Shown here piece by piece: positions 16,854 through 41,080 of a stretch of 64,000 bases of DNA. How positions within the stretch are numbered: position 1 is the first letter of the stretch; every line of letters begins with the position of its first letter. This DNA comes from Podarcis liolepis (taxonomy: Eukaryota), in NCBI GenBank assembly GCA_965112155.1, contig OZ218110.1. One strand, 5' to 3'. The notes beneath the pieces were generated by a model, which searched no databases, was not told the origin of the DNA, and worked only from the letters and a program-made list of their open reading frames with translations. A program made the translations under genes and the position numbers.

Positions 16854-17694
16854 CTACGTTACACATTCCAGAATGATACGTGAGCCGAAATAAAGCCATT
16901 CCCCAGAATCTTATTTCAGCATTCCTGATGGGGCATCCTCCAATGTACCAAAGGACAGGAGGCTAACTAGGGGAACTCAGGGGGAACGGGGAGTGCCCCC
17001 CACAGCATCTGCCACCAGACTCAACTGCCTCAAGATAGGATCCTCTGTATGTATTTCTTCCTTGAACTTTACATTGATATAATGGGTGAGAGAAAGCCGT
17101 GAAGGATTAGTAAAATAAATTAATTATTTAACTTGTCATGGCCTTTCCAGAAACATCCACAAAGGTAGTTCGAACCATGCATTTGAATTAACAGAACTTC
17201 ACATACAACTGGAAAGAAGAGAAATGGAGAGAAACCAAAATTGACCTATCCTAACACTGGTAAAAACAAACTATCATTTAGAAAAGCTCTTGAAATATGG
17301 TACCTCACCAACAAAAGAATAGCATCATATGGGATTAGCACTTGCCTTCAACCAATCTCTTTGATGCGCAGTGATATTCCCAGGATTCAAAACCTGTAGT
17401 AAAAAAGTTAAGGAAACGCAATAGGCTCCGAGCAAGCTGGAACAGCCACATTTGCACAGAACTGTTAGTGATAATGTTTATAACCCTAAATGGGTGTAGA
17501 TGCTTCTCTCTTAAAATAAGTGATCCTGGGGGACTTTGATGCGGATTGGCTATCGGGGGGGGGGGCATTTATCTTGCAACTGACTTCTAAACCCTATGGG
17601 GATTCTTGTATTAATTATTGCTCCATGGGATTGCTTTACTGTCTGGATGAAACATATGACTGGAATTTTGCAGCGTTCTGGTTTCAAGTTCAGT

Positions 17695-18040
17695 TGTGTG
17701 GGGCAGGAACGGAGGAAGGGGGTGTGGTGGGGATGGACTGCCCCGAGTGTCTTCGCTGAGGGGGGTGATATTTGGCGCGCCACCCACCCACGACTCCCAA
17801 GCTTACCCCGAGCAATCAGGGCAAGGGGGGGAGCTGCTGCCCCCAGGGGTGGCTTGCTCCGCCCCTGGCTACAGAATGTTCACGCCACTCCATGCACCCA
17901 AGTGGATATCCCGCACCTGGGAGGGCACCCTCCACACCTCATGCCCCTCAGGAGCGCACTCTGCCCCCCTCAGAAGCACACCCCACCCCCCTTGGGAGCA
18001 CGCCCATCCTGGGTAGCACAGCCATATGCTCTGCCACTGG
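17695..18040. mobile_element. GC-rich non-autonomous DNA transposon-like repeat
   Basis: Shares cccacgactcccaagcttaccccgagc with the 1215-1486 element; ends gctctgccactg. Confidence 0.4.
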
Positions 18041-18327
18041 TGTGGGGTGTATGTTTTAAAAACAAAATCATAACAAAATACCCGTTTTAAGACTTTTGAT
18101 TTATATACATAAATTGATTGCCTTTAGCTGCCCTCTAGTGTTCAAACTTCCTGCTTGACAGCAGCAGCTTCCTATAGCGTTCAGTTTATGCCCGGATTGA
18201 TTTTATAAACAATAATGGGAAAATAGCAGGCTTTTTGCTGTGATGTTTATTTTCAAAAGTATATTGGCAGTGCCACATTTATGATTTTGCAAAATGAGAA
18301 TCTGGGTTAAAATCATGCATTTCTCAT

Positions 18328-31100: not shown

Positions 31101-31874
31101 ATTCTGGCTCTGTTTTGTTTGTGGGGCAGTTATAAGGCAATGCACAATCATCCTGATTTGCTTCCAAGGTATTTACACATCTTCCTGTTAATCATTCATT
31201 CCTCCCACACTTTTCAGTTTCTTTCCCCATCACTGCACAGTCTCTGGATGTGTTTTATGTGGATTGCTTATGCTAGGGCATGGGCACTAGGACACTTTAT
31301 TCCACTTGAATTATGCAAGACTACATTTAGTTTTCTGATAAGGGCTACAATCCGACTTGCAAAATAGTGGAAGTATGTGGGACAGGCTGTATGGCACCGA
31401 CATAACTCTCCTCAGTGTCTTGCTGCTGCTTGCTCACTACCCTTCTAGCTCTCTGCCAACCCAAACAAATGCATTGGTGGTGTCACGATGCATCACATAA
31501 GGAATGTTCATGCATGAGTGTATAGCCTGGGCTGTTTGCCTCACTGCCTGATCACTTGGTCAGAGTGAGTTGCCTGCCTTAAGCAGCAAATGCTGCAGAA
31601 GAGAAAGCCATATCAAAGCACTAAATGAAAAGCTCTCCATGCCCCCAAAGCTGAATTGCCTTCAGGGGTAATGCCAGCCTTGAAGGTTAAAATGCCAATC
31701 CAGTCTCTATTTGGAATGAAGGGACACCATATTGTCTTTTGCCTCAGGTAGCAAGATATTTTGGACTGGCCCATGAATGTGTTGCCTTGTGCTTCACTTT
31801 AGGATATAGTAGGAATAAAATATATACATCATTTCCCACTATGGCCATTGCCTTTCAAGTACTCTTTTTGCAAT

Positions 31875-33462
31875 TTCTTTTTTTTTTAATAATCTTTATT
31901 AAAATTTCAAAAAGTACAAAAAACAAAACAGAAAAACAAAAGAAAACACAAAAAACAACAAAAAAGGTTCCACCTTTTAAATCTCATTTTCAATAACTTC
32001 TTTTCATGACTTCCCCACGCCTCCCCTTCTTGTATTCCAGCTCCAATTGTTTGTTCAAACAAGTTTTTATCCTTAGTGTCTTAACCATAATTTGTTAATT
32101 TACTTAGCCATAATTTGTTAATATACTTCTTTATAATATGTTTAACCCTTAGTTCATTATTATGCTTGGTTCAGTTTATTCAGCAACTTTTAAAATATAT
32201 ACCTTAATCATATATAAAAGAAAAAAGAGATAAAGAAACAAGAGAAAAGATACCTTTCCTAAGGTTGTCCCTAGGTCCCATCCACGGGTTCCCCATTCTT
32301 ATAATAATAAACAACATAAAATTTTACACTGCAAAGTAAAAATCAGGCCCCCTTTGGACTTCTAAACCCCACCCTTCTCTCCCCAGTTTCAATCCCAAAC
32401 CAAAGTCCAGTTAGTCCATCTTTTTAGCCTGGTGACCTTACGTCCGAGGCTCTCAAATCTCTCTCAGTCACTTTCAGGCGGCTTCTTCGGAGGTCTCTTA
32501 TGCTTAACACCCAAACTCGAAGCGGTACCTTCTCAGTACTGACCATGTTTCTTCCAGCCAGGCCTACTTGTTTAAAGGTGGAACTCCAGCTCTGTTTCTT
32601 AAATCTATATGTCCCAAATAGTCCAGCTTTCACCTTGATCGAACTATAGTTCATCTTGGCAGGTCTCTGGCTCTCATTTGTCTTCTGTAACATTTCAGCC
32701 ACCCCTTCTTTCTGCTCCTCCTGTTCAGCAAGTGCCTTTTCCTCCTCTCCAATCTTTGATTTCTTTTCTTGTCCAGCTGCCTGTGTTTTGAACATCAAGT
32801 CCCTTTCCAACTCAGTAGGTATATTTTCTGTTGACTTCGATTTTGTAGGACTTGTAGACAAAACATGGCCTTGCTCGAACATCTCTCGCAGCTTTCCCAT
32901 AAGAAAGATAAGCTCTTGCAAGTCAGCTCGTATTTCCCGACCTAATTCCATTCTTGTAATGTCCAAGAATCCCCTCTAGAGGGATTCTGGTTACTTAGTA
33001 TTCCTTTCACTTCCGATCCAAAAGTCAAATTTATTTGTATCAATCTTTCTTTACTTTCAATATTTTGTAGCGATATAACCAGTTAAAATTTAGGCTTTCA
33101 GTTTTTCCCAACTTTGACAGCTAATTTGACAGCTGTCAAAAGTTTTCTGTAGATCCTCAGCAGGCTCTTTTCACGGTTTACTCCCGGGCTTGAGAAAAAT
33201 GGTACTTAATCCAAACAAATAAACTCTCGTCCTCCAGCACATTAACTTAGACTTTTAAATCCGTGGAATTTATATCTTTTATCCAATCACGAAAAGAAAA
33301 AACGACAGTTCTTCTCACAACCTTAGTTGGCAGATCCTTGCTTTAAACTGTTTACAATGGGGGGGAGACGGACTTCCTTTTTTTTTCCACCTCCCCCGCT
33401 CGTACCAAATTTACAAACGAATTATTTGTAATCCAATTTCCAAATTACTCACGGGTTGTTGT
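31875..33462 (-). mobile_element. Non-autonomous poly(A) retroelement, copy 1 (5'-truncated), with 175-aa ORF
   Basis: Poly(A) and AATAAA at the left end; colinear with 35742-38236. Confidence 0.75.
32424..32951 (-). CDS. Retroelement-encoded uncharacterised protein (175 aa)
   Basis: ATG 32951 MELGREIRADLQEL...RLKVTERDLRASDVRSPG; homologous to 36209-36820. Confidence 0.55.
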   Translation of the reverse strand: MELGREIRADLQELIFLMGKLREMFEQGHVLSTSPTKSKSTENIPTELERDLMFKTQAAGQEKKSKIGEEEKALAEQEEQKEGVAEMLQKTNESQRPAKMNYSSIKVKAGLFGTYRFKKQSWSSTFKQVGLAGRNMVSTEKVPLRVWVLSIRDLRRSRLKVTERDLRASDVRSPG

Positions 33463-33639
33463 AACTAGCTGACTCACAACAAGCGATAACGCTAGCAACC
33501 CATATGAAATCAAAGGAACTGAATGGAGTAGTTTGGCTGCTATGTCTCACAACTTTTGATCAGCTTTTAAACATAAGGAACAGGTTTGAGTCAGATGAAT
33601 TCTTGCAATAAATAGTAATCTGCTAAGAACAGCTCTTGG

Positions 33640-33820
33640 GGTTTTGTGGGGGGATTGCTCAAGGGAGTCAGGACAGTGCAGAATACTTTACTAAGCTGTC
33701 TTTGGGTGTTGGGAAACATCTGGAGAATTATTACGGTACCACAAAAAATACAAGCCATAGCGGGATGAGAAGAGTAGTACAAAAAAGGGTTTAGAAGATG
33801 AGTATTTTTTTAGGATGGGG
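33640..33820 (-). pseudogene. Degraded OR TM6-TM7 remnant downstream of OR6
   Basis: Translation YSSHPAMACIFCGTVIILQMFPNTQRQLSKVFCTVLTPLSNP resembles CSSHLTVVCIFYGTIIIVYMLP..RDLNKVF..YTVLTPLINP. Confidence 0.75.
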
Positions 33821-33908
33821 GAACTTTTCTTCTGTAAACAGCCTTCCTGTAAACACTCTATTATAAAGCCTCTCACATCTTACTCTCATAAGCCATGACG
33901 AAGGATCT

Positions 33909-34895
33909 TCAACGGCTAATAAGGTTAAAGGATGGAGGGGAGCAAAGTCTCGCATGAACTGTCAATCTACCACATAGAGTCTTTAAGGCTTTGTGAACTT
34001 CTTTGTTTCTCAAACTGTAGATGAGAGGATTGATCGAGGGATTCAGGATGGTGTAGAAGAGTGAAAATACTTTATTGAGATCTCTCAGAGTCGGGGTGTC
34101 TGGCAACATGTAGACAATGATTATTGAACCATAAAAAGTGCAAACCACAATGAGATGAGAGGAGCAGGTCAAAAATGCTTTTTTTCTCCCAACAGCAGAT
34201 GGAATCTTCAGGATAGTACTCATAATACAAACGTAGGATATGAGAATCAACAAGAATGGGGTGACAGTGATAAAGAAGGCTGAGAAAAGGGTAAAGAGTT
34301 CAATCCTGCTAGTGTCACTGCAAGAGAGTTTTTCAATTGGGGTGAGGTCACAAAAGTAATGATTAATGACATTGGGCCCACAGAAGTATAACTGAGCCAG
34401 AAGACCTACTAGTATGCCATTAAAGAATGGACCATTTGTCCATGTCCCAGCCATAAGCTGACAACATAGTTTTCCATTCATGATGGAAGCATACAGCAAA
34501 GGTCTACATATTGCCACATAGCGGTCATAGGACATCACGGCCAGAATATATGTTTCTATAGCTACAAAAGAGCCAAAGAAATAAAACTGGGTTAGGCACC
34601 CATTTAAAGAGATGGTTCTCTTTTGAGATATCATATCAGCTAACATTTTGGGCAGGATGACTGAGCTGGTACAAGTCTCCAGGCAGGACAAATTGGCCAG
34701 GAAGAAGTACATGGGTGTGTGGAGGTGCTGATCAGCCACAACAAGCAAAATGATGAAACAATTCCCAGTTAGTGTCAAGATGTAAATCATGAGGAAGAAA
34801 GAGAAAAGGAAAGGCTGCAGCTCAAGCAGATTCCCAAAACCCAGGAGGATGAATTCTCTGATTGCTGTCTGGTTTCCTTCTTCTGTGTTCCCCAT
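33909..34895 (-). CDS. Olfactory receptor OR6 (OR11A-like)
   Basis: ATG 34895 (MGNTEEGNQT), full OR motifs; acceptor at 34926-34927. Confidence 0.96.
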   Translation of the reverse strand: MGNTEEGNQTAIREFILLGFGNLLELQPFLFSFFLMIYILTLTGNCFIILLVVADQHLHTPMYFFLANLSCLETCTSSVILPKMLADMISQKRTISLNGCLTQFYFFGSFVAIETYILAVMSYDRYVAICRPLLYASIMNGKLCCQLMAGTWTNGPFFNGILVGLLAQLYFCGPNVINHYFCDLTPIEKLSCSDTSRIELFTLFSAFFITVTPFLLILISYVCIMSTILKIPSAVGRKKAFLTCSSHLIVVCTFYGSIIIVYMLPDTPTLRDLNKVFSLFYTILNPSINPLIYSLRNKEVHKALKTLCGRLTVHARLCSPPSFNLISR

Positions 34896-35198
34896 TGCTT
34901 TAATCAACAGGAGGTCAACACAACCCTACAACATAACAAGAACCAATGGTTTAAATGAAGTGGTATTCACATATTTTGGGGACAGTACTGTGCAAACCTA
35001 TACATGACTACTCAGAAACACCACTGCAGAAAATTCAACGAAACTTATTCCCTGTTTGAAAAATGCGTAAATGATTTCAATAGAAATTAATAATTCGAGC
35101 CATATGCCATGTGTCTTATTAAATTTAAAATTTTTGAATATCTGATATCTCAGTTCTGAGGGTTAGGCAGGGCTTTGATGAAAGCATATGGCTTTAGT

Positions 35199-35430
35199 AC
35201 TTACATGCACCCATTTACTGTTGGATTATGCTCCAGGAGTTAGTGCTGCTAGCAGAGGTTGTGTGATGAACAACACCATGCAATTGAGTGTCTCTGAAAC
35301 TGCATCTTGCAAAAACATAAAAGGAAGTGAGCCTGGAGACTTACTGCTGATTTTCTAGCTGCGTGGAATACATATATGATGCAAACAACTTCTTAAACCC
35401 AACAGGGATCCCAATATTAATTCCTCCTCT
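35199..35430 (-). promoter_or_regulatory. Putative promoter and non-coding first exon of OR6
   Basis: Donor GTAAGT at 35199-35204 and block atgatgcaaacaacttcttaaacccaacagggatcccaatattaa, conserved upstream of OR7, OR8 and OR9. Confidence 0.6.
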
Positions 35431-36208
35431 GTGGACTACTATCTCATCTGGGTAAATTGTGACCTAGAACATCTATAGGTAGGGATGTTAGAGAATTCAA
35501 AACAAAAACAGAAACGGAAATTGAAGAGGAAAGTGATGAAGCTTGCTTATTTGCCCCATATTAGAAATAGAAATCAATCAAGTGAATACCAGTTAGTATT
35601 TGCTGTTGCTGGTGTGCAGGGTTTTAAGTATAATCAATAGCATTATTTTCCCAATTTAAATTGTGTTCCCTTTGCATGAAAATGAACGGCCTTTGAAATG
35701 AAAAGAATGGTGTTACATCAATGATTACATCAATTACTTTATTATTATTTTTTATAAAATTTTTATCAGGATTTTCTCATTTTTTAAGACAAACACACAA
35801 AAACATAAACATACATATCAACATTACACACAAATAACACATATAATTGTAAAATCTTATTTTCTTAACCACTTTCCCGGACTTCCCCCACCTCCCCTTC
35901 TTGCATCCCCATTCAAAGTTTAGCCCAGCAAGTTCTTTGTACCCAAATTAATCCCTTGTTAATATTTTACTTAAATCATCTTAATTAACCAATTTCAAAC
36001 CTCTATATTTCATTTTAATACCCAACATCAACCCCTTTTTCTAAGATTGATCCACATTCCCTTTCACGAAGTTCCCAATTATTAAAATACTTACAAAAAA
36101 TCTTAACAAATAAAAACATATACTTGTAACCCTTTGGGTTCTAAAGTTCTTTCCCCCCCCTTCCCCCGGTTTTGATCCCTAAAAAAATGTCCTTCAATCT
36201 GTCAGTTC

Positions 36209-36820
36209 TCAGCCTGGATCTATCACATCCGAGGCCTTTAAGTCTCTTAAGTCTCTTTCAGTCCCTTTCAGCCGGTTTTGTTGACTGTCCTTTATGTTGA
36301 ACATCCGATCTCGGAGCATCTTTGACCCAGTAGGGTCTGTATTTTTTCCAACCAGTCCTCCATATTCAAAGGAAGAGTCCAGATCCTGCTTCTTATTCTT
36401 TCCAAGTCCAAATATCCCAAATGTCCCAAACATTCCAATTTTCACCTTGGTCAAAATTGTAATCCATAGGTCTTCCGGACTCCCCATAGGGAAGAATCCC
36501 CAATCTTCATTCTTGATTTCAAACCAAATTTTCGACATCCGAACTTTACCTTCCTTGTATTCTGACCTTAGAGGCCTCTGGTTGTCCTTTTTCACTTGCA
36601 TCATTTCTGCTCCTCCTTCACATTCCTCCAAAACGGCACATATATCTTGCTTCCCAGCTGTAGATTCTTCTTGAGTCAAGTCCACCACTTCAGCAGAGTT
36701 GTTTATTTTAAAATTCAAAGTTGTCAGATTCGTAGCCATAACATGACTCTGCTCTTGCAGCATTCCCAGGAGTTCAAAGACCCTATCCAGCTCTGCTTGT
36801 AATTTTCCATCTGCAGCCAT
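36209..36820 (-). CDS. Retroelement-encoded uncharacterised protein (203 aa)
   Basis: ATG 36820 MAADGKLQAELDRVFELL...RLKGTERDLRDLKASDVIDPG; homologous to 32424-32951. Confidence 0.55.
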   Translation of the reverse strand: MAADGKLQAELDRVFELLGMLQEQSHVMATNLTTLNFKINNSAEVVDLTQEESTAGKQDICAVLEECEGGAEMMQVKKDNQRPLRSEYKEGKVRMSKIWFEIKNEDWGFFPMGSPEDLWITILTKVKIGMFGTFGIFGLGKNKKQDLDSSFEYGGLVGKNTDPTGSKMLRDRMFNIKDSQQNRLKGTERDLRDLKASDVIDPG

Positions 36821-36950
36821 TGTAATGTCCCAAATCCCCTCTAGAGGGATTTTGGTTACTAAGTGTTCTTTTTCCAACAATCAGGTTATTTTGTTAAAAT
36901 AAAAAAATTCCTTCCAGTAGCACCTTAAAGACCAGCTAAGTTAGTTATTG

Positions 36951-36988
36951 GTATGAGCTTTCGTGTGCATGCACACTTCTTCAGATAC
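36951..36988 (-). ncRNA. Minimal type I hammerhead ribozyme motif
   Basis: Minus strand reads GTAT CTGAAGA A GTGTGC AT GCACAC GAAA GC TC ATAC. Confidence 0.7.
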
Positions 36989-37363
36989 ACTGAAACAGAA
37001 GTTGCCAGATCCTTCTATATAGTGAGAAGGTGGGGAGGGGTGTTACTCAGAAGGGTGGTGGGAATGGGAGATAGGCAGATAGCTGGGAGAGCCTGTTGAC
37101 GACTCTTAACGACTGTAATAGGTCTTACAGGAAAAGGCAAGGGGTGAGGAGGTGAGAAATGGTTTAGTCATGTATAGTGAGATAAGAATCCAATGTCTTT
37201 GTTCAGCCCAGGTATTTCCATGGTTTTAAGTTTGGTAATGAGTTGTAATTCAGCAGCTTATCTCCCATTCCCACCACCTATCTCCCATTCCCACCACCCT
37301 TCTGAGTAACACCCCTCCCCACCTTCTCACTATATAGAAGGATCTGGCAACTTCTGTTTCAGT

Positions 37364-37401
37364 GTATCTGAAGAAGTGTGCATGCACACGAAAGCTCATA
37401 C
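37364..37401 (+). ncRNA. Minimal type I hammerhead ribozyme motif
   Basis: Stem I GTAT/ATAC, core CUGAnGA, stem II GTGTGC/GCACAC, GAAA, minimal stem III, UC cleavage site. Confidence 0.7.
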
Positions 37402-38959
37402 CAAGAACTAACTTAGTTGGTCTTTAAGGTGCTACTGGAAGGAATTTTTTTATTTTGACTATGGCAGACCAACACGGCTACCTATCTACTACTGGAACCA
37501 TGGAAGGTTATTTTGTTGTTATTGCCACTCTATTTTTAAAAGCTTACAGTCCAATGTAACAAAAGTAACCGACACAAGTAACAAAAACGGAATTTCCTGA
37601 CTTTGACAGCTCAGTTGACAGCTGTCAAACTCTATAGATATCTTCACAGGCTCCCTCACAGGTCACTCCCGGATCCAGGGGAGGGGGTTAAACTTCAACT
37701 CTAAAGATCAGTTCTAATCCTCCAGCGATAAACTTATAAGTCCAAATCGTAAAATTAAGAATTTTATCTCAAAAAGAGAAAAACAGTCTCTCGATCTTAG
37801 TTGTTTAATTCTTGCTTTAAATTGCCTGCAAGGGGGGGGAGACGGACTTCCTTTTGGCACCTCCCCCGGTCGTAATTTTTTAATTCCAAATTCCATATTA
37901 CTCATGGGTTGTTACATTTTGAGTCCAAATGATCAAGGAAAGAAGTCAGCGCTCTCCAGTCATGGCTTGCGGCTTCACTCTGTGGAAGAAGCGGTCTACT
38001 CACAGCACCACGCCACTCTCCGCCACCCGCTCCGAAGCCTTTAAAAAGGCTTCTTTGTGGGTCGGAGGGGGCGCAAATGGTGCCCGCCGAGTCACCAAGT
38101 CCACAGGCATCCGCGCCTGTGGTTTCTAAGGGTCCCTGCATCGCCGCCGCGGCAGGACCCCTCCTCCACCGAGCCGATTCCCTCCAGAGCTTGGAGGGAA
38201 TCCGCCATTAGCTGATCGCACCAACCCGGAAGTCCCTACATCAATTACTTTAAGTAGTAGGCAGGTCAGATGGTTTTGCCTAAGGAGGTGGTCCTTTGGG
38301 TATTTGAAGGCAATATGGATGCTTGATGGTGAGGATTGCAGGCTTGATTGAAGGATGGCAAGAATAACAAAAGCAATGCACACTTAAGTCTGAGCAGACT
38401 GAATAGATATATTACTGTATGCAGCTGAACACAGTTCACAGAAATAGACTACAAGAAACATATTACTCCATAGCCAGGCATGACAGAAAGAAATGCAGTA
38501 AGCAGCATAGATCATGCCCCTTTGGTTGCTGCCAGGGAAATCTGTAGACACAGCTGTAGGTTGTCCCCTTTACACATCTAGAAACAGACACAGCTAAATC
38601 TTAAGGATCCAGCACAAAATATGCTTATTGAGCATTTATCCTGATGTGCTTGCACAAAGATTACACATATTACAGCCATTGTACTTATTATGGCCATCAA
38701 CTCAGGGTAAGGAGATAAGGAGGAAATTACCTACTTTCATTTGATTTAATATATCAAATCAACACTTTCTTGCTAAGACAACAGCCATAACACAGCAGCT
38801 GGTCAGAAATAACAACTGAGAGCATAGTCGGATAAACAAGCCCATGCACAAAAGGTGGTATAGTGCAAATAAACAGAGGAGAAGTCATACAACTAAATGG
38901 AGTACTCTAGTCACCCCAACAGAGTCCAAAATATATACCCAAAATGTTTTATTAGCTTT

Positions 38960-39223: not shown

Positions 39224-40195
39224 TTAAAGGGAGAAAATTGAGTAAAGCCTTTCATAAACCCTTAATCTACCAAATACAAACTTTAAGGCTTTGTGAACTT
39301 CTTTGTTTCTCAAGCTATAGATGAGGGGATTGATCAAGGGATTTAGGATGGTGTAGAAGAGTGAAAATACTTTATTGAGATCTCTCAGAGTCGGGGTTTC
39401 TGGCAACATGTAGACAACGATTATTGAACCATAAAAAGTGCAAACCACAATGAGATGAGAGGAGCAGGTCAAAAACGCTTTTTCCCTCCCAATAGCAGAT
39501 GGAATCTTCAGGACAGTGGTGATAATGTAAACATAGGATGTGAGAGTCAACAAGAATGGGGTGATGGTATAAAAGAAGGCTGAGAGGACAGTGAAGAGCT
39601 CAATGCTGCTAGTGTCACTGCAAGAGAGTTTTTCCATTGGGTTCAGGTCACAAAAATAATGGTCTATGACATTGGGTCCACAGAAATGTAATTGAGCTAG
39701 TAAGTATATAACTATGCAATTAATCAACATACCATTAATCCATGTTGCAACTATAAGCTGAAAACATAGTTTTCTATTCATAATAGAAGCATACAGCAAT
39801 GGTCTGCATATTGCCACATAGCGGTCAAAGGACATCATTGCCAGGAGATATGTTTCTACAGCTGCACAAGAGCCAAATAAGTAAAACTGGGCTATGCATC
39901 CATTCACAGAGATGGTTTTCTCTTCAGTTATCAAATTGATCAACATTTTGGGCAGGATGATTGAACTATAGCAAGTCTCCAGGCAGGACAAATTGGCCAG
40001 GAAGAAATACATAGGGGTGTGAAGGTGCTGATCAGCCACAACAAGCAAAATAATGAGAAAATTGCTAGTTAATGTCAAGATGTAAATCATGAGGAAGAGG
40101 GAGAAAAGGAAAGGCTGTAGCTCAGGACGATTCCCAAAACCCAAGAGGATGAATTCTTTGATAGTTGTCTGGTTTCCTTCTTCTGTGTTCCCCAT
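39224..40195 (-). CDS. Olfactory receptor OR7 (OR11A-like)
   Basis: ATG 40195 (MGNTEEGNQT), full OR motifs. Confidence 0.96.
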   Translation of the reverse strand: MGNTEEGNQTTIKEFILLGFGNRPELQPFLFSLFLMIYILTLTSNFLIILLVVADQHLHTPMYFFLANLSCLETCYSSIILPKMLINLITEEKTISVNGCIAQFYLFGSCAAVETYLLAMMSFDRYVAICRPLLYASIMNRKLCFQLIVATWINGMLINCIVIYLLAQLHFCGPNVIDHYFCDLNPMEKLSCSDTSSIELFTVLSAFFYTITPFLLTLTSYVYIITTVLKIPSAIGREKAFLTCSSHLIVVCTFYGSIIVVYMLPETPTLRDLNKVFSLFYTILNPLINPLIYSLRNKEVHKALKFVFGRLRVYERLYSIFSL

Positions 40196-41080
40196 TGTTT
40201 TAATCAACTGGAGGTCAACACAACCCTACAACATAACAAGAACCAATGGTTTTAATGAAGTGGTATTCACATATTTTGGGGACAGTACAGCAAGAGCAAA
40301 TACACAACCTAAATGAAGGGTAGGTGGGCAGGTGTTCCACAGAGCAAGCCCAAAAAGGCCTCCAGTGTCAAGCCACAGTTTTAATTGGCCCCACAGCCAC
40401 ACACACCCTGTGCTCCCATTGGAGCACAGACCCTAGGGTGACCGTGGCACCACCACCAGCGCAACGCAGGGTAGAGCCCTGCCCCCACATTGGGGAGGAG
40501 GGTGTCCTGCACCCAGCGCACAACCTGGACCCTCCATTAAGAAGATCCAATTTACCGCTAAAGTTTACTACAGTTGTTGTTGTTTCTAATTAATTGATGG
40601 CATCACAATATTATTTAATTATCCCTCTTTGCAGGTGGACAGGTAGATCCTTAGGTGGAGAGCAATGTCCTTAGGTGGAGAGCAAGGCCTCCTGCTTCCA
40701 GACATGGAAAGCTCTAAAGCTTCCCCTCCTAAATTATTGGTGCTTCAATGGCAGAGATAACAAAAAGTAGTCATTCAGGGTGCGGGGTACTGGGGATAGA
40801 TCAGGCTGAGCTTTGGATCATGAGACTTCCCAACCCCGTAATATGTATACACACAAGGCTCATTGACACATTAAATGTAAACTCAGAAACAAACCTCACA
40901 TACTTTGGTGGAATGTATTTCCTTCTTACCAAGTGTGTATAGAATCCCACCCTAAATAAATAACAGGAGCCAAATGCTATTTCTGCCATGATGTCCAAAA
41001 TGTTTCTATTTGTGATATTTTGCTTTTTAATGTTTGACAGGACTTTGAAAGAGGTCAAGAATAGAAGCATACGCTTTAGT

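Follow-up and report, generated by a model that had tools for sequence, protein, structure and literature searches.

Passengers of long interspersed nuclear elements (LINEs) are nearly always non-coding, as is the case for short interspersed nuclear elements (SINEs) and SVA, or otherwise carry a recognisable LINE gene, as do HAL1 and HeT-A. HeT-A, resident at Drosophila telomeres, is an element without long terminal repeats (non-LTR) which encodes a Gag-like protein only and borrows its reverse transcriptase (RT), the Gag protein directing the element's own RNA. For zebrafish, Nakamura et al. are said to have described in 2012 the ORF1 protein of ZfL2-1, which reportedly is devoid of an RRM or zinc knuckle, combines a coiled coil with low-complexity regions, and self-associates. 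HAL1 is a non-autonomous L1 derivative encoding ORF1p only, with several independent origins (PMC5753468). In the current work, a 64,000-nucleotide stretch of contig OZ218110.1 from Podarcis liolepis (assembly GCA_965112155.1), hereafter referred to as the window, was analysed with respect to two related stretches, named copy 1 and copy 2, each of which contains an intact open reading frame (ORF). Both are probably copies of a lacertid, non-autonomous, polyadenylated non-LTR retroposon family which is driven by L1 and whose ORF specifies an adaptor or packaging protein.

The family resembles HAL1 in being non-autonomous and poly(A)-tailed, in displaying L1-type insertion marks, and in possessing one ORF and no ORF2, so that copying would be expected to occur in trans by the L1 ORF2 protein. 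However, the HAL1 ORF specifies a recognisable L1 ORF1p (coiled coil, RRM and C-terminal domain), whereas the lizard protein, being ≈200 amino acids (aa) in length, mostly acidic and predicted to form a single confident helix, matches neither Transposase_22 nor ORF1 structures. An earlier note, made from the sequence alone, had proposed an L1-mobilised, HAL1-like family; the repeat family, the L1-type marks and the lifestyle stand, whereas membership of HAL1 does not, since no L1 ORF1 domain is detectable and the likeness would therefore extend to lifestyle only. Like HeT-A, the family has a sole protein of its own and takes its RT from another element, yet HeT-A Gag contains zinc knuckles and targets telomeres, while the lizard protein is without knuckles and the family occurs at dispersed TT|AAAA-type sites. 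The zebrafish ORF1 protein belongs to an autonomous L2 element with a stem-loop/microsatellite 3' end and includes a basic, nucleic-acid-binding region, in contrast to the poly(A) end, the lack of RT and the mostly acidic protein of the lizard family, and no sequence similarity between the two proteins was observed in the two large protein searches presented below. SVA and processed pseudogenes, as L1 passengers, share with the family a Pol II transcript, a poly(A) signal, a target-site duplication (TSD), 5' truncation and mobilisation in trans, but contain no ORF conserved for their own spread.

The lifestyle is thus already known from HAL1 and HeT-A, and the family stands out by its orphan protein; no description of such a lizard family was found in the full-text literature, Dfam and Repbase being outside the scope of that search. 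A recently active vertebrate family with a private protein of no detectable ancestry, kept through deep subfamily divergence, represents a test case for what, besides a poly(A) tail, helps an RNA to compete for the L1 ORF2 protein, and for the origin of a new protein inside a transposon.

A multi-copy, recently active family

Copy 1 is a complete retroposon located on the minus strand (38236-35742), with a length of 1,873 bp when a nested Penelope-like insert of 609 bp is left out (Table 1). The features previously read from it (a length of ≈1.9 kb, a 16-bp TSD, an A-rich tail, a G-rich 3' tract and a CpG-rich leader) are all in the sequence. The pre-insertion site reads ..CTACTT|AAAGTAATTG.., in agreement with a TT|AAAA-like target for what is a single insertion, given here with no statistic, and CTT|AAAG is the type of site nicked by the L1 endonuclease. 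The Penelope-like insert, which is flanked by its own 13-nt TSD AGGTTATTTTGTT (36883-36895 and 37505-37517) and sits 62 nt upstream of the copy 1 ATG, is not part of the retroposon family and, having landed inside copy 1, is therefore the younger of the two.

Parts of the element (ORF and 3' untranslated region (UTR)) occur in 20 sequencing runs, which cover eight organism labels and eight studies. Four low-coverage DNA assemblies of related organisms were compared with positions 35600-36895 (ORF, 3'UTR and flank) at a likeness of at least 80%, whereby 429 to 995 contigs per run were found to match, with a summed word depth over the element of ≈50-190 times that of the unique flank, a measure which is not a copy number. 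In one run (X1), an 839-nt contig spans the 3' junction of copy 1 with 0 differences. In two runs with other organism labels (X4 and X8), contigs match the flank up to position 35741 and then continue with, respectively, 357 and 837 letters that do not belong to the element; in this comparison, which covers the 3' flank of copy 1, the orthologous site appears empty. Since the X4 and X8 contigs depart from the match exactly at the TSD boundary, copy 1 would have inserted after those lineages split and would represent a young insertion. The family is multi-copy, its insertions differ between related organisms, it has been recently active and, as far as the data reach, it is lacertid. Within the element, a 3'UTR tract at ≈35864-35907 forms a depth peak in four of the four runs. 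As a separate observation, three runs each contain one contig in which position 36530 is joined to 36786, so that 255 nt of the ORF (exactly 85 codons) are skipped; this join may reflect either a short-ORF subfamily or an assembly artefact, the shorter side being matched over 27 letters.

The earlier claim of a diverged second copy with an intact 175-aa ORF holds with respect to homology (BLASTP E 8e-20 between the two ORF proteins, with 31% local identity and 41% identity in a MAFFT alignment), and is to be corrected in that copy 2 has no TSD detectable by search and is missing the CpG-rich leader. Its alignment to copy 1 spans from the motif AACAACCC[G/A]TGAGTAAT (at ≈33462) through the A10 tail. 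Because of the missing leader and the lack of a detectable TSD, copy 2 is taken to be either 5'-truncated or endowed with another 5' end. The homology between the copies starts ≈8 nt before a splice-donor-like site (37451-37460 and 33451-33460, reading CCC|GTGAGTAAT in copy 2 and ATGAGT in copy 1), and, considering that it starts near such a consensus-looking donor, the differing 5' ends could stem from alternative leader exons instead of simple 5' truncation.

The two copies are ≈63% identical overall, with ungapped identities of 70% in the shared 5'UTR, which is the best-conserved part of the element between them, 63% in the ORF and 60% in the 3'UTR. They are independent insertions from different subfamilies, because in a tree of the protein family copy 1 groups with relative P0001 (82% identical) and copy 2 with the P0009 cluster (77%). 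Tandem duplication of an olfactory-receptor unit as the origin of both copies was considered and rejected, given that copy 1 is flanked by a TSD of its own and that its site seems to be empty in other species, and given that the copies fall into separate sublineages, in which each has relatives closer to it than the other copy.

Table 1. Positions of the features of copy 1, copy 2 and the nested insert within the window.
Feature	Position	Strand	Details
TSD, 5' copy (copy 1)	38237..38252	-	16 nt, TAAAGTAATTGATGTA; preceded by CTT, giving target TT|AAAG; direct reading
CpG-rich 5' leader, copy 1	37915..38236	-	322 nt, starts GGGACTTCCGGG
Shared 5'UTR, upstream part	37518..37914	-	Conserved block GGGGGAGGTG..AAAAGGAAGTCCGTCTCCCCCCC
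Penelope-like insert	36896..37504	.	609 bp; two 183-nt inverted arms, 98.4% alike
Shared 5'UTR, last 75 nt	36821..36895	-	89% identity to copy 2; family-wide depth peak
ORF, copy 1	36209..36820	-	203 aa + stop from ATG
3'UTR, copy 1	35757..36208	-	G-rich tracts 36168-36153 and 35910-35874; 467 nt with tail
A-rich tail, copy 1	35742..35756	-	AAAAAATAATAATAA
TSD, 3' copy (copy 1)	35726..35741	-	16 nt, TAAAGTAATTGATGTA; direct reading
Copy 2	31878..33462	-	Shared 5'UTR, ORF, 3'UTR, AATAAA (31900-31895), A10 tail (31887-31878)
ORF, copy 2	32424..32951	-	175 aa + stop, pI (isoelectric point) 9.7

An orphan protein and its relatives

The prediction of a single ORF of 203 aa (36820-36209) unaccompanied by RT or endonuclease was borne out, as no RT, endonuclease or other Pfam domain was found in element ORFs of at least 60 aa on both strands; the copy 1 ORF extends to 223 aa if started at an upstream in-frame TTG. 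A word-indexed search of 5.8 billion clusters returned 6 matches with the single protein and 14 with a profile, and an exhaustive HMMER profile search of 1.84 billion representatives returned 11 clusters. The relatives of the protein total ≈25, have a length of 129 to 215 aa, are all unnamed or labelled "hypothetical", and derive from ≈1-kb Logan contigs with the exception of two Podarcis lilfordi gene models (labelled "hypothetical"). Such ORFs are therefore already entering lizard gene sets (that of Podarcis lilfordi) as "hypothetical proteins", where they need to be marked as repeat-borne. The HMMER search, run without a length filter, did report the partial match P0015 (profile positions 1-81) but recovered no relative beyond 215 aa. 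Pfam gave no match for any of the 21 aligned members, a profile search of PDB yielded a chance match only (E 2.1), and the ESM Atlas contained no neighbour (scores of 0.77-0.79, under the useful level); in line with what the earlier note had expected, a clear alignment to a known ORF1 or host gene thus emerged neither from Pfam, PDB and the ESM Atlas nor from the two large protein searches.

The tree of the 21 members comprises two major clades and ≈8 supported sublineages, with path lengths in excess of one change per column between them. All 21 carry an intact ORF, at 28-82% identity to copy 1, and the start (MAADGK.. or MELGRE..) and end (ASD[VL]xxPG-stop) of the protein are common to every one of them. 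In some subfamilies (P0010, P0013, P0023, P0024 and P0026), the stretch which in copy 1 corresponds to 36821-36895 is translated from an upstream ATG (M.IPLEG..DIT). The blocks which had been listed as shared by the two copies (EQxHV, EGxAEMxQ...QRP, KVKxGxFGT, KKQ..SxF..GLxGxN and RLKxTERDLR..ASDV..PG*) are all present, and two blocks from the middle of the protein, KVKxGxFG and KKxDW, are found again in different clades.

Structure prediction with AlphaFold2 (AF2) gave a mean predicted local distance difference test (pLDDT) value of 44 for copy 1 (8-row alignment) and of 46 for P0005 (21-row alignment). Within copy 1, residues 2-43 are modelled as a helix (pLDDT 77-89), a similar N-terminal helix is seen in P0005, and hydrophobic a/d positions (7, 11, 14, 18, 21, 28, 32, 35 and 39) are retained in almost every member, with the heptad pattern being gone after position 28 in the copy-2 clade. 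This 3-4 hydrophobic repeat is a coiled-coil signature, and matches the helical or coiled-coil N-terminus that had been predicted. The middle of the protein is acidic in most members and variable in length; the pI is 4.5-6 in most members versus ≈10 in the copy-2 clade, and each member contains 0-2 Cys residues and no zinc knuckles. Block conservation amounts to 0.73 for residues 1-10, 0.50-0.60 for the middle and 0.84-0.89 for the C-terminus.

The position and nature of this helix constitute one argument that the family could be a true HAL1-type derivative, whose ORF would be a remnant of a lizard L1 ORF1 (a coiled coil plus a degenerate tail) with its RRM and C-terminal domain lost or unrecognisable, and whose protein would join L1 particles via the coiled coil. 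The heptad helix indeed occupies the N-terminus, as the coiled coil does in L1 ORF1p, the 3'UTR contains an L1-style G-rich tract next to the L1-type insertion marks, and coiled coils diverge too quickly for sequence searches to connect them. However, none of the 21 members has a Transposase_22 or ORF1 match at E values up to 10, as the earlier note had anticipated in seeing no L1 ORF1 RRM-entry motif (RRxNxRxxGxPE), the profile search of PDB gave no match to L1 ORF1p structures, and no relative exceeds 215 aa even though lacertid L1 ORF1 genes are expected in the same Logan assemblies. Descent from L1 ORF1 is consequently considered unlikely.

The C-terminus represents the most conserved part of the protein (36209-36250), reading RLKGTERDL(RDL)KASDVIDPG-stop in copy 1 and ..RDL[KR]ASD[VL]xxPG-stop in the family. 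The second RDL is a 9-nt duplication private to copy 1, which is apparent as a 9-nt deletion at 36238 in contigs from other copies. A 2A-type skipping peptide, of the sort found in viruses and known in some non-LTR elements, was entertained for this terminus, which resembles one, and rejected: the spacing from D to PG is one residue short, the E is missing and the N occurs in some clades only, while a stop codon is found where the consensus D[VI]ExNPG-P has Pro.

Retention of the frame and propagation

Considering that a frame may stay open by chance, the two ORFs were compared with shuffled and simulated sequences. None of 20,000 shuffles of either ORF remains open, and following 37% neutral substitutions, before indels are taken into account, a 203-codon frame is open in ≈0.09% of simulations (P ≈0.0009). 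Six indels separate the two ORFs (of 3, 1, 10, 33, 6 and 3 aa), all six of which are in frame, whereas UTR indels are of mixed lengths, in agreement with the earlier statement that both frames stay open despite indels. From P(open) and retention in ≈8 deep lineages it follows that frame retention needs selection on the replicating lineages. Against this conclusion, it was weighed whether a non-coding repeat could show open frames by accident, owing to its young age and base composition; copy 1 is young and its frame would last regardless, and ORF DNA is conserved no better than the UTRs, but in view of the shuffles, the value of P(open) at the observed divergence of the copies, the exclusively in-frame ORF indels, and the homologous start and stop found throughout the 21 members (28-82% identical to copy 1), this explanation is for practical purposes refuted.

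Selection on the protein itself appears modest. The ratio of non-synonymous to synonymous substitution rates (dN/dS), a check called for by the earlier note, was calculated according to Nei and Gojobori (NG86) for the two window copies, and is thus derived from one pair of dead copies aligned via their protein: it is 0.59 (dN 0.48, dS 0.81), i.e. below 1, and falls to 0.23 in the last 20 codons (dN 0.19, dS 0.82), where 11 codons differ, 6 of them synonymously. Identity at the three codon positions of the two ORFs decreases in the order 0.66 > 0.61 > 0.57. The amino-acid constraint is accordingly real but weak, as judged from these sequences, and is concentrated at both termini. The proposal that master elements were selected to keep a small protein is supported by the intact ORF in ≈8 sublineages and by a dN/dS below 1, with the reservation that the constraint is weak.

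This distribution of constraint also bears on whether translation itself matters and not the protein, in that ribosome transit would protect the RNA or position it for capture by nascent L1 ORF2 protein, with sequence constraint being confined to the beginning of the protein and its final ≈15 residues (ASD[VL]xxPG-stop), the latter perhaps acting in the ribosome at termination. Conservation indeed peaks at both protein ends, dN/dS is ≈0.23 in the last 20 codons versus ≈0.6 elsewhere, the charge and length of the middle vary freely, and a language model finds the sequence to be barely protein-like (recognition 1360). Nevertheless, the conserved heptad pattern at residues 7-39 indicates a folded, interacting helix, KVKxGxFG and KKxDW recur across clades, and the C-terminal motif fails the 2A consensus, so that a role for translation alone is rated as distinctly unlikely.

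Returning to an L1-driven retroposon with an adaptor or packaging protein as the preferred explanation, the following life cycle can be envisaged. A master copy would be transcribed by Pol II from a promoter within its own CpG-rich leader, and its RNA would be polyadenylated at the terminal AATAAA signal. At a nicked target of the TT|AAAA type, a resident L1-type LINE would then supply the endonuclease/RT protein that copies the RNA into DNA; new copies made in this way would be expected to end in poly(A), to lie between target duplications of 15-16 nt and to be often truncated at the 5' end. It is the insertion hallmarks alone which suggest L1 to be the driver, namely the poly(A), the TSD of 16 nt, and TT|AAAG as the target. 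Replicating lineages have preserved the frame while accumulating numerous in-frame indels and over one substitution per site, and since the frame is kept open across lineages, translation of the ORF would be needed for propagation. The protein would act on its own RNA and oligomerise through the N-terminal heptad helix, perhaps co-assembling with the coiled coil of a partner ORF1, after which the marked or packaged RNA would be used by the L1 ORF2 protein. By analogy with what ORF1p does for HAL1 and Gag for HeT-A, a cis-acting adaptor or packaging role through the coiled coil is the most likely mechanism, and a protein-protein adaptor is favoured over a nucleic-acid chaperone because most members are acidic.

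A more specific variant would consist of a hijacking factor of de novo origin, the helix of which enters L1 ORF1p trimers or binds ORF2p, while the C-terminal peptide holds the terminating ribosome near the poly(A) so that the RNA is passed to ORF2p. We regard this variant as quite improbable; if true, it would constitute a de novo protein that confers on a non-autonomous retroposon a cis-like preference.

The mRNA-like layout of copy 1, comprising a CpG-island-type leader, a single ORF, AATAAA, poly(A) and a TSD, would equally be displayed by processed pseudogenes of a lineage-specific host gene family, copied by L1 from a highly expressed germline mRNA, and two such ORFs are found among Podarcis lilfordi gene models as hypothetical proteins. 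However, hundreds of contigs per genome together with ≈8 deep sublineages with intact copies require that retrocopies were transcribed, no longer or named homologue is present in any annotated proteome searched, and the 794-nt 5'UTR is better conserved than the ORF. A host-gene origin is on these grounds very improbable.

Several findings weigh against an L1-driven family maintained for an adaptor or packaging protein. Protein constraint is weak, with a dN/dS of ≈0.6 from a single pair, DNA conservation of the ORF (63%) is no better than that of the UTRs (70% and 60%), and the 19 best-supported variant sites in the ORF show no enrichment at third codon positions, numbering 8, 5 and 6 at positions 1, 2 and 3, respectively (hand count). 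The confidence of the AF2 models is low beyond the first helix, and the net charge is unconserved, which fits poorly with a protein that binds RNA as ORF1p does. All relatives entered the databases as called ORFs and thus say nothing about how many of the genomic copies have kept the frame. Lastly, no L1 that could serve as a partner is located within the window.

Untranslated regions and genomic setting

The leader of copy 1 (38236-37915) has a GC content of 0.60, an observed/expected (o/e) CpG ratio of 0.77 and 22 CpG dinucleotides, with other parts of the element exhibiting CpG o/e ratios of 0.36-0.51. It is presumed to function as an internal Pol II promoter and transcription start region, and it aligns to no part of copy 2. 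The 5'UTR of copy 1 totals 794 nt with the leader included. Its shared part contains the palindrome TTGACAGCTGTCAA and a second GCTGTCAA (37629-37601, minus strand), and the arrangement TTTGACAGCTGTCAA-n5-GCTGTCAAAGT is kept in the 5'UTR of both copies (37601-37629 and 33107-33136, minus strand). The perfect palindrome TGACAGCTGTCA is a possible internal promoter or enhancer element. We take it to correspond to a dimer site of TALE homeodomain factors (MEIS/TGIF/PKNOX).

An imperfect palindrome, CCAAAATCCCTCTAGAGGGGATTTGG, is located at 36855-36830, i.e. 10 nt upstream of the copy 1 ATG, with its counterpart in copy 2 at 32962-32988, and a hairpin is predicted there in both copies, with z values of only -1.2 and -1.6. 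In the copy 2 palindrome, an A-to-G change in the left arm is paired with a C in the right arm, which appears compensatory, and many contigs of other species break at this ATG-proximal palindrome (36830-36855). None of the folds considered (the start-codon hairpin, the 5'UTR hairpins and that of the G-rich tract) beats shuffled sequences (z of -1.6 to +0.5), and Rfam produced no match over 31500-38600 at E values up to 1, the Penelope-like insert yielding no hammerhead either. At the 3' end, copy 1 contains GATAAA (35767-35762) where copy 2 has AATAAA at the same place.

Antisense ORFs overlap the main ORF in both copies, at 36294-36674 (plus strand, 126 aa) and 32656-32979 (plus strand, 107 aa), neither of which has a Pfam match. 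A conserved antisense gene was rejected, as these two ORFs have just a 17-residue stretch in common, and they probably arise from the purine richness of the sense strand.

The window represents an olfactory-receptor gene cluster, in which the ORFs at 33909-34907 and 39224-40207, among others, match the Pfam family 7tm_4. A 164-aa ORF starting with ATG (17596-18090, plus strand) that belongs to no Pfam family lies inside this cluster. Within the otherwise unique 3' flank of copy 1, the bin 35644-35687 displays 3-10 times the depth of neighbouring bins in all four runs; it also has differences (G to T and C to T) at 35678 and 35687 that are shared, and is probably a small, older repeat fragment.

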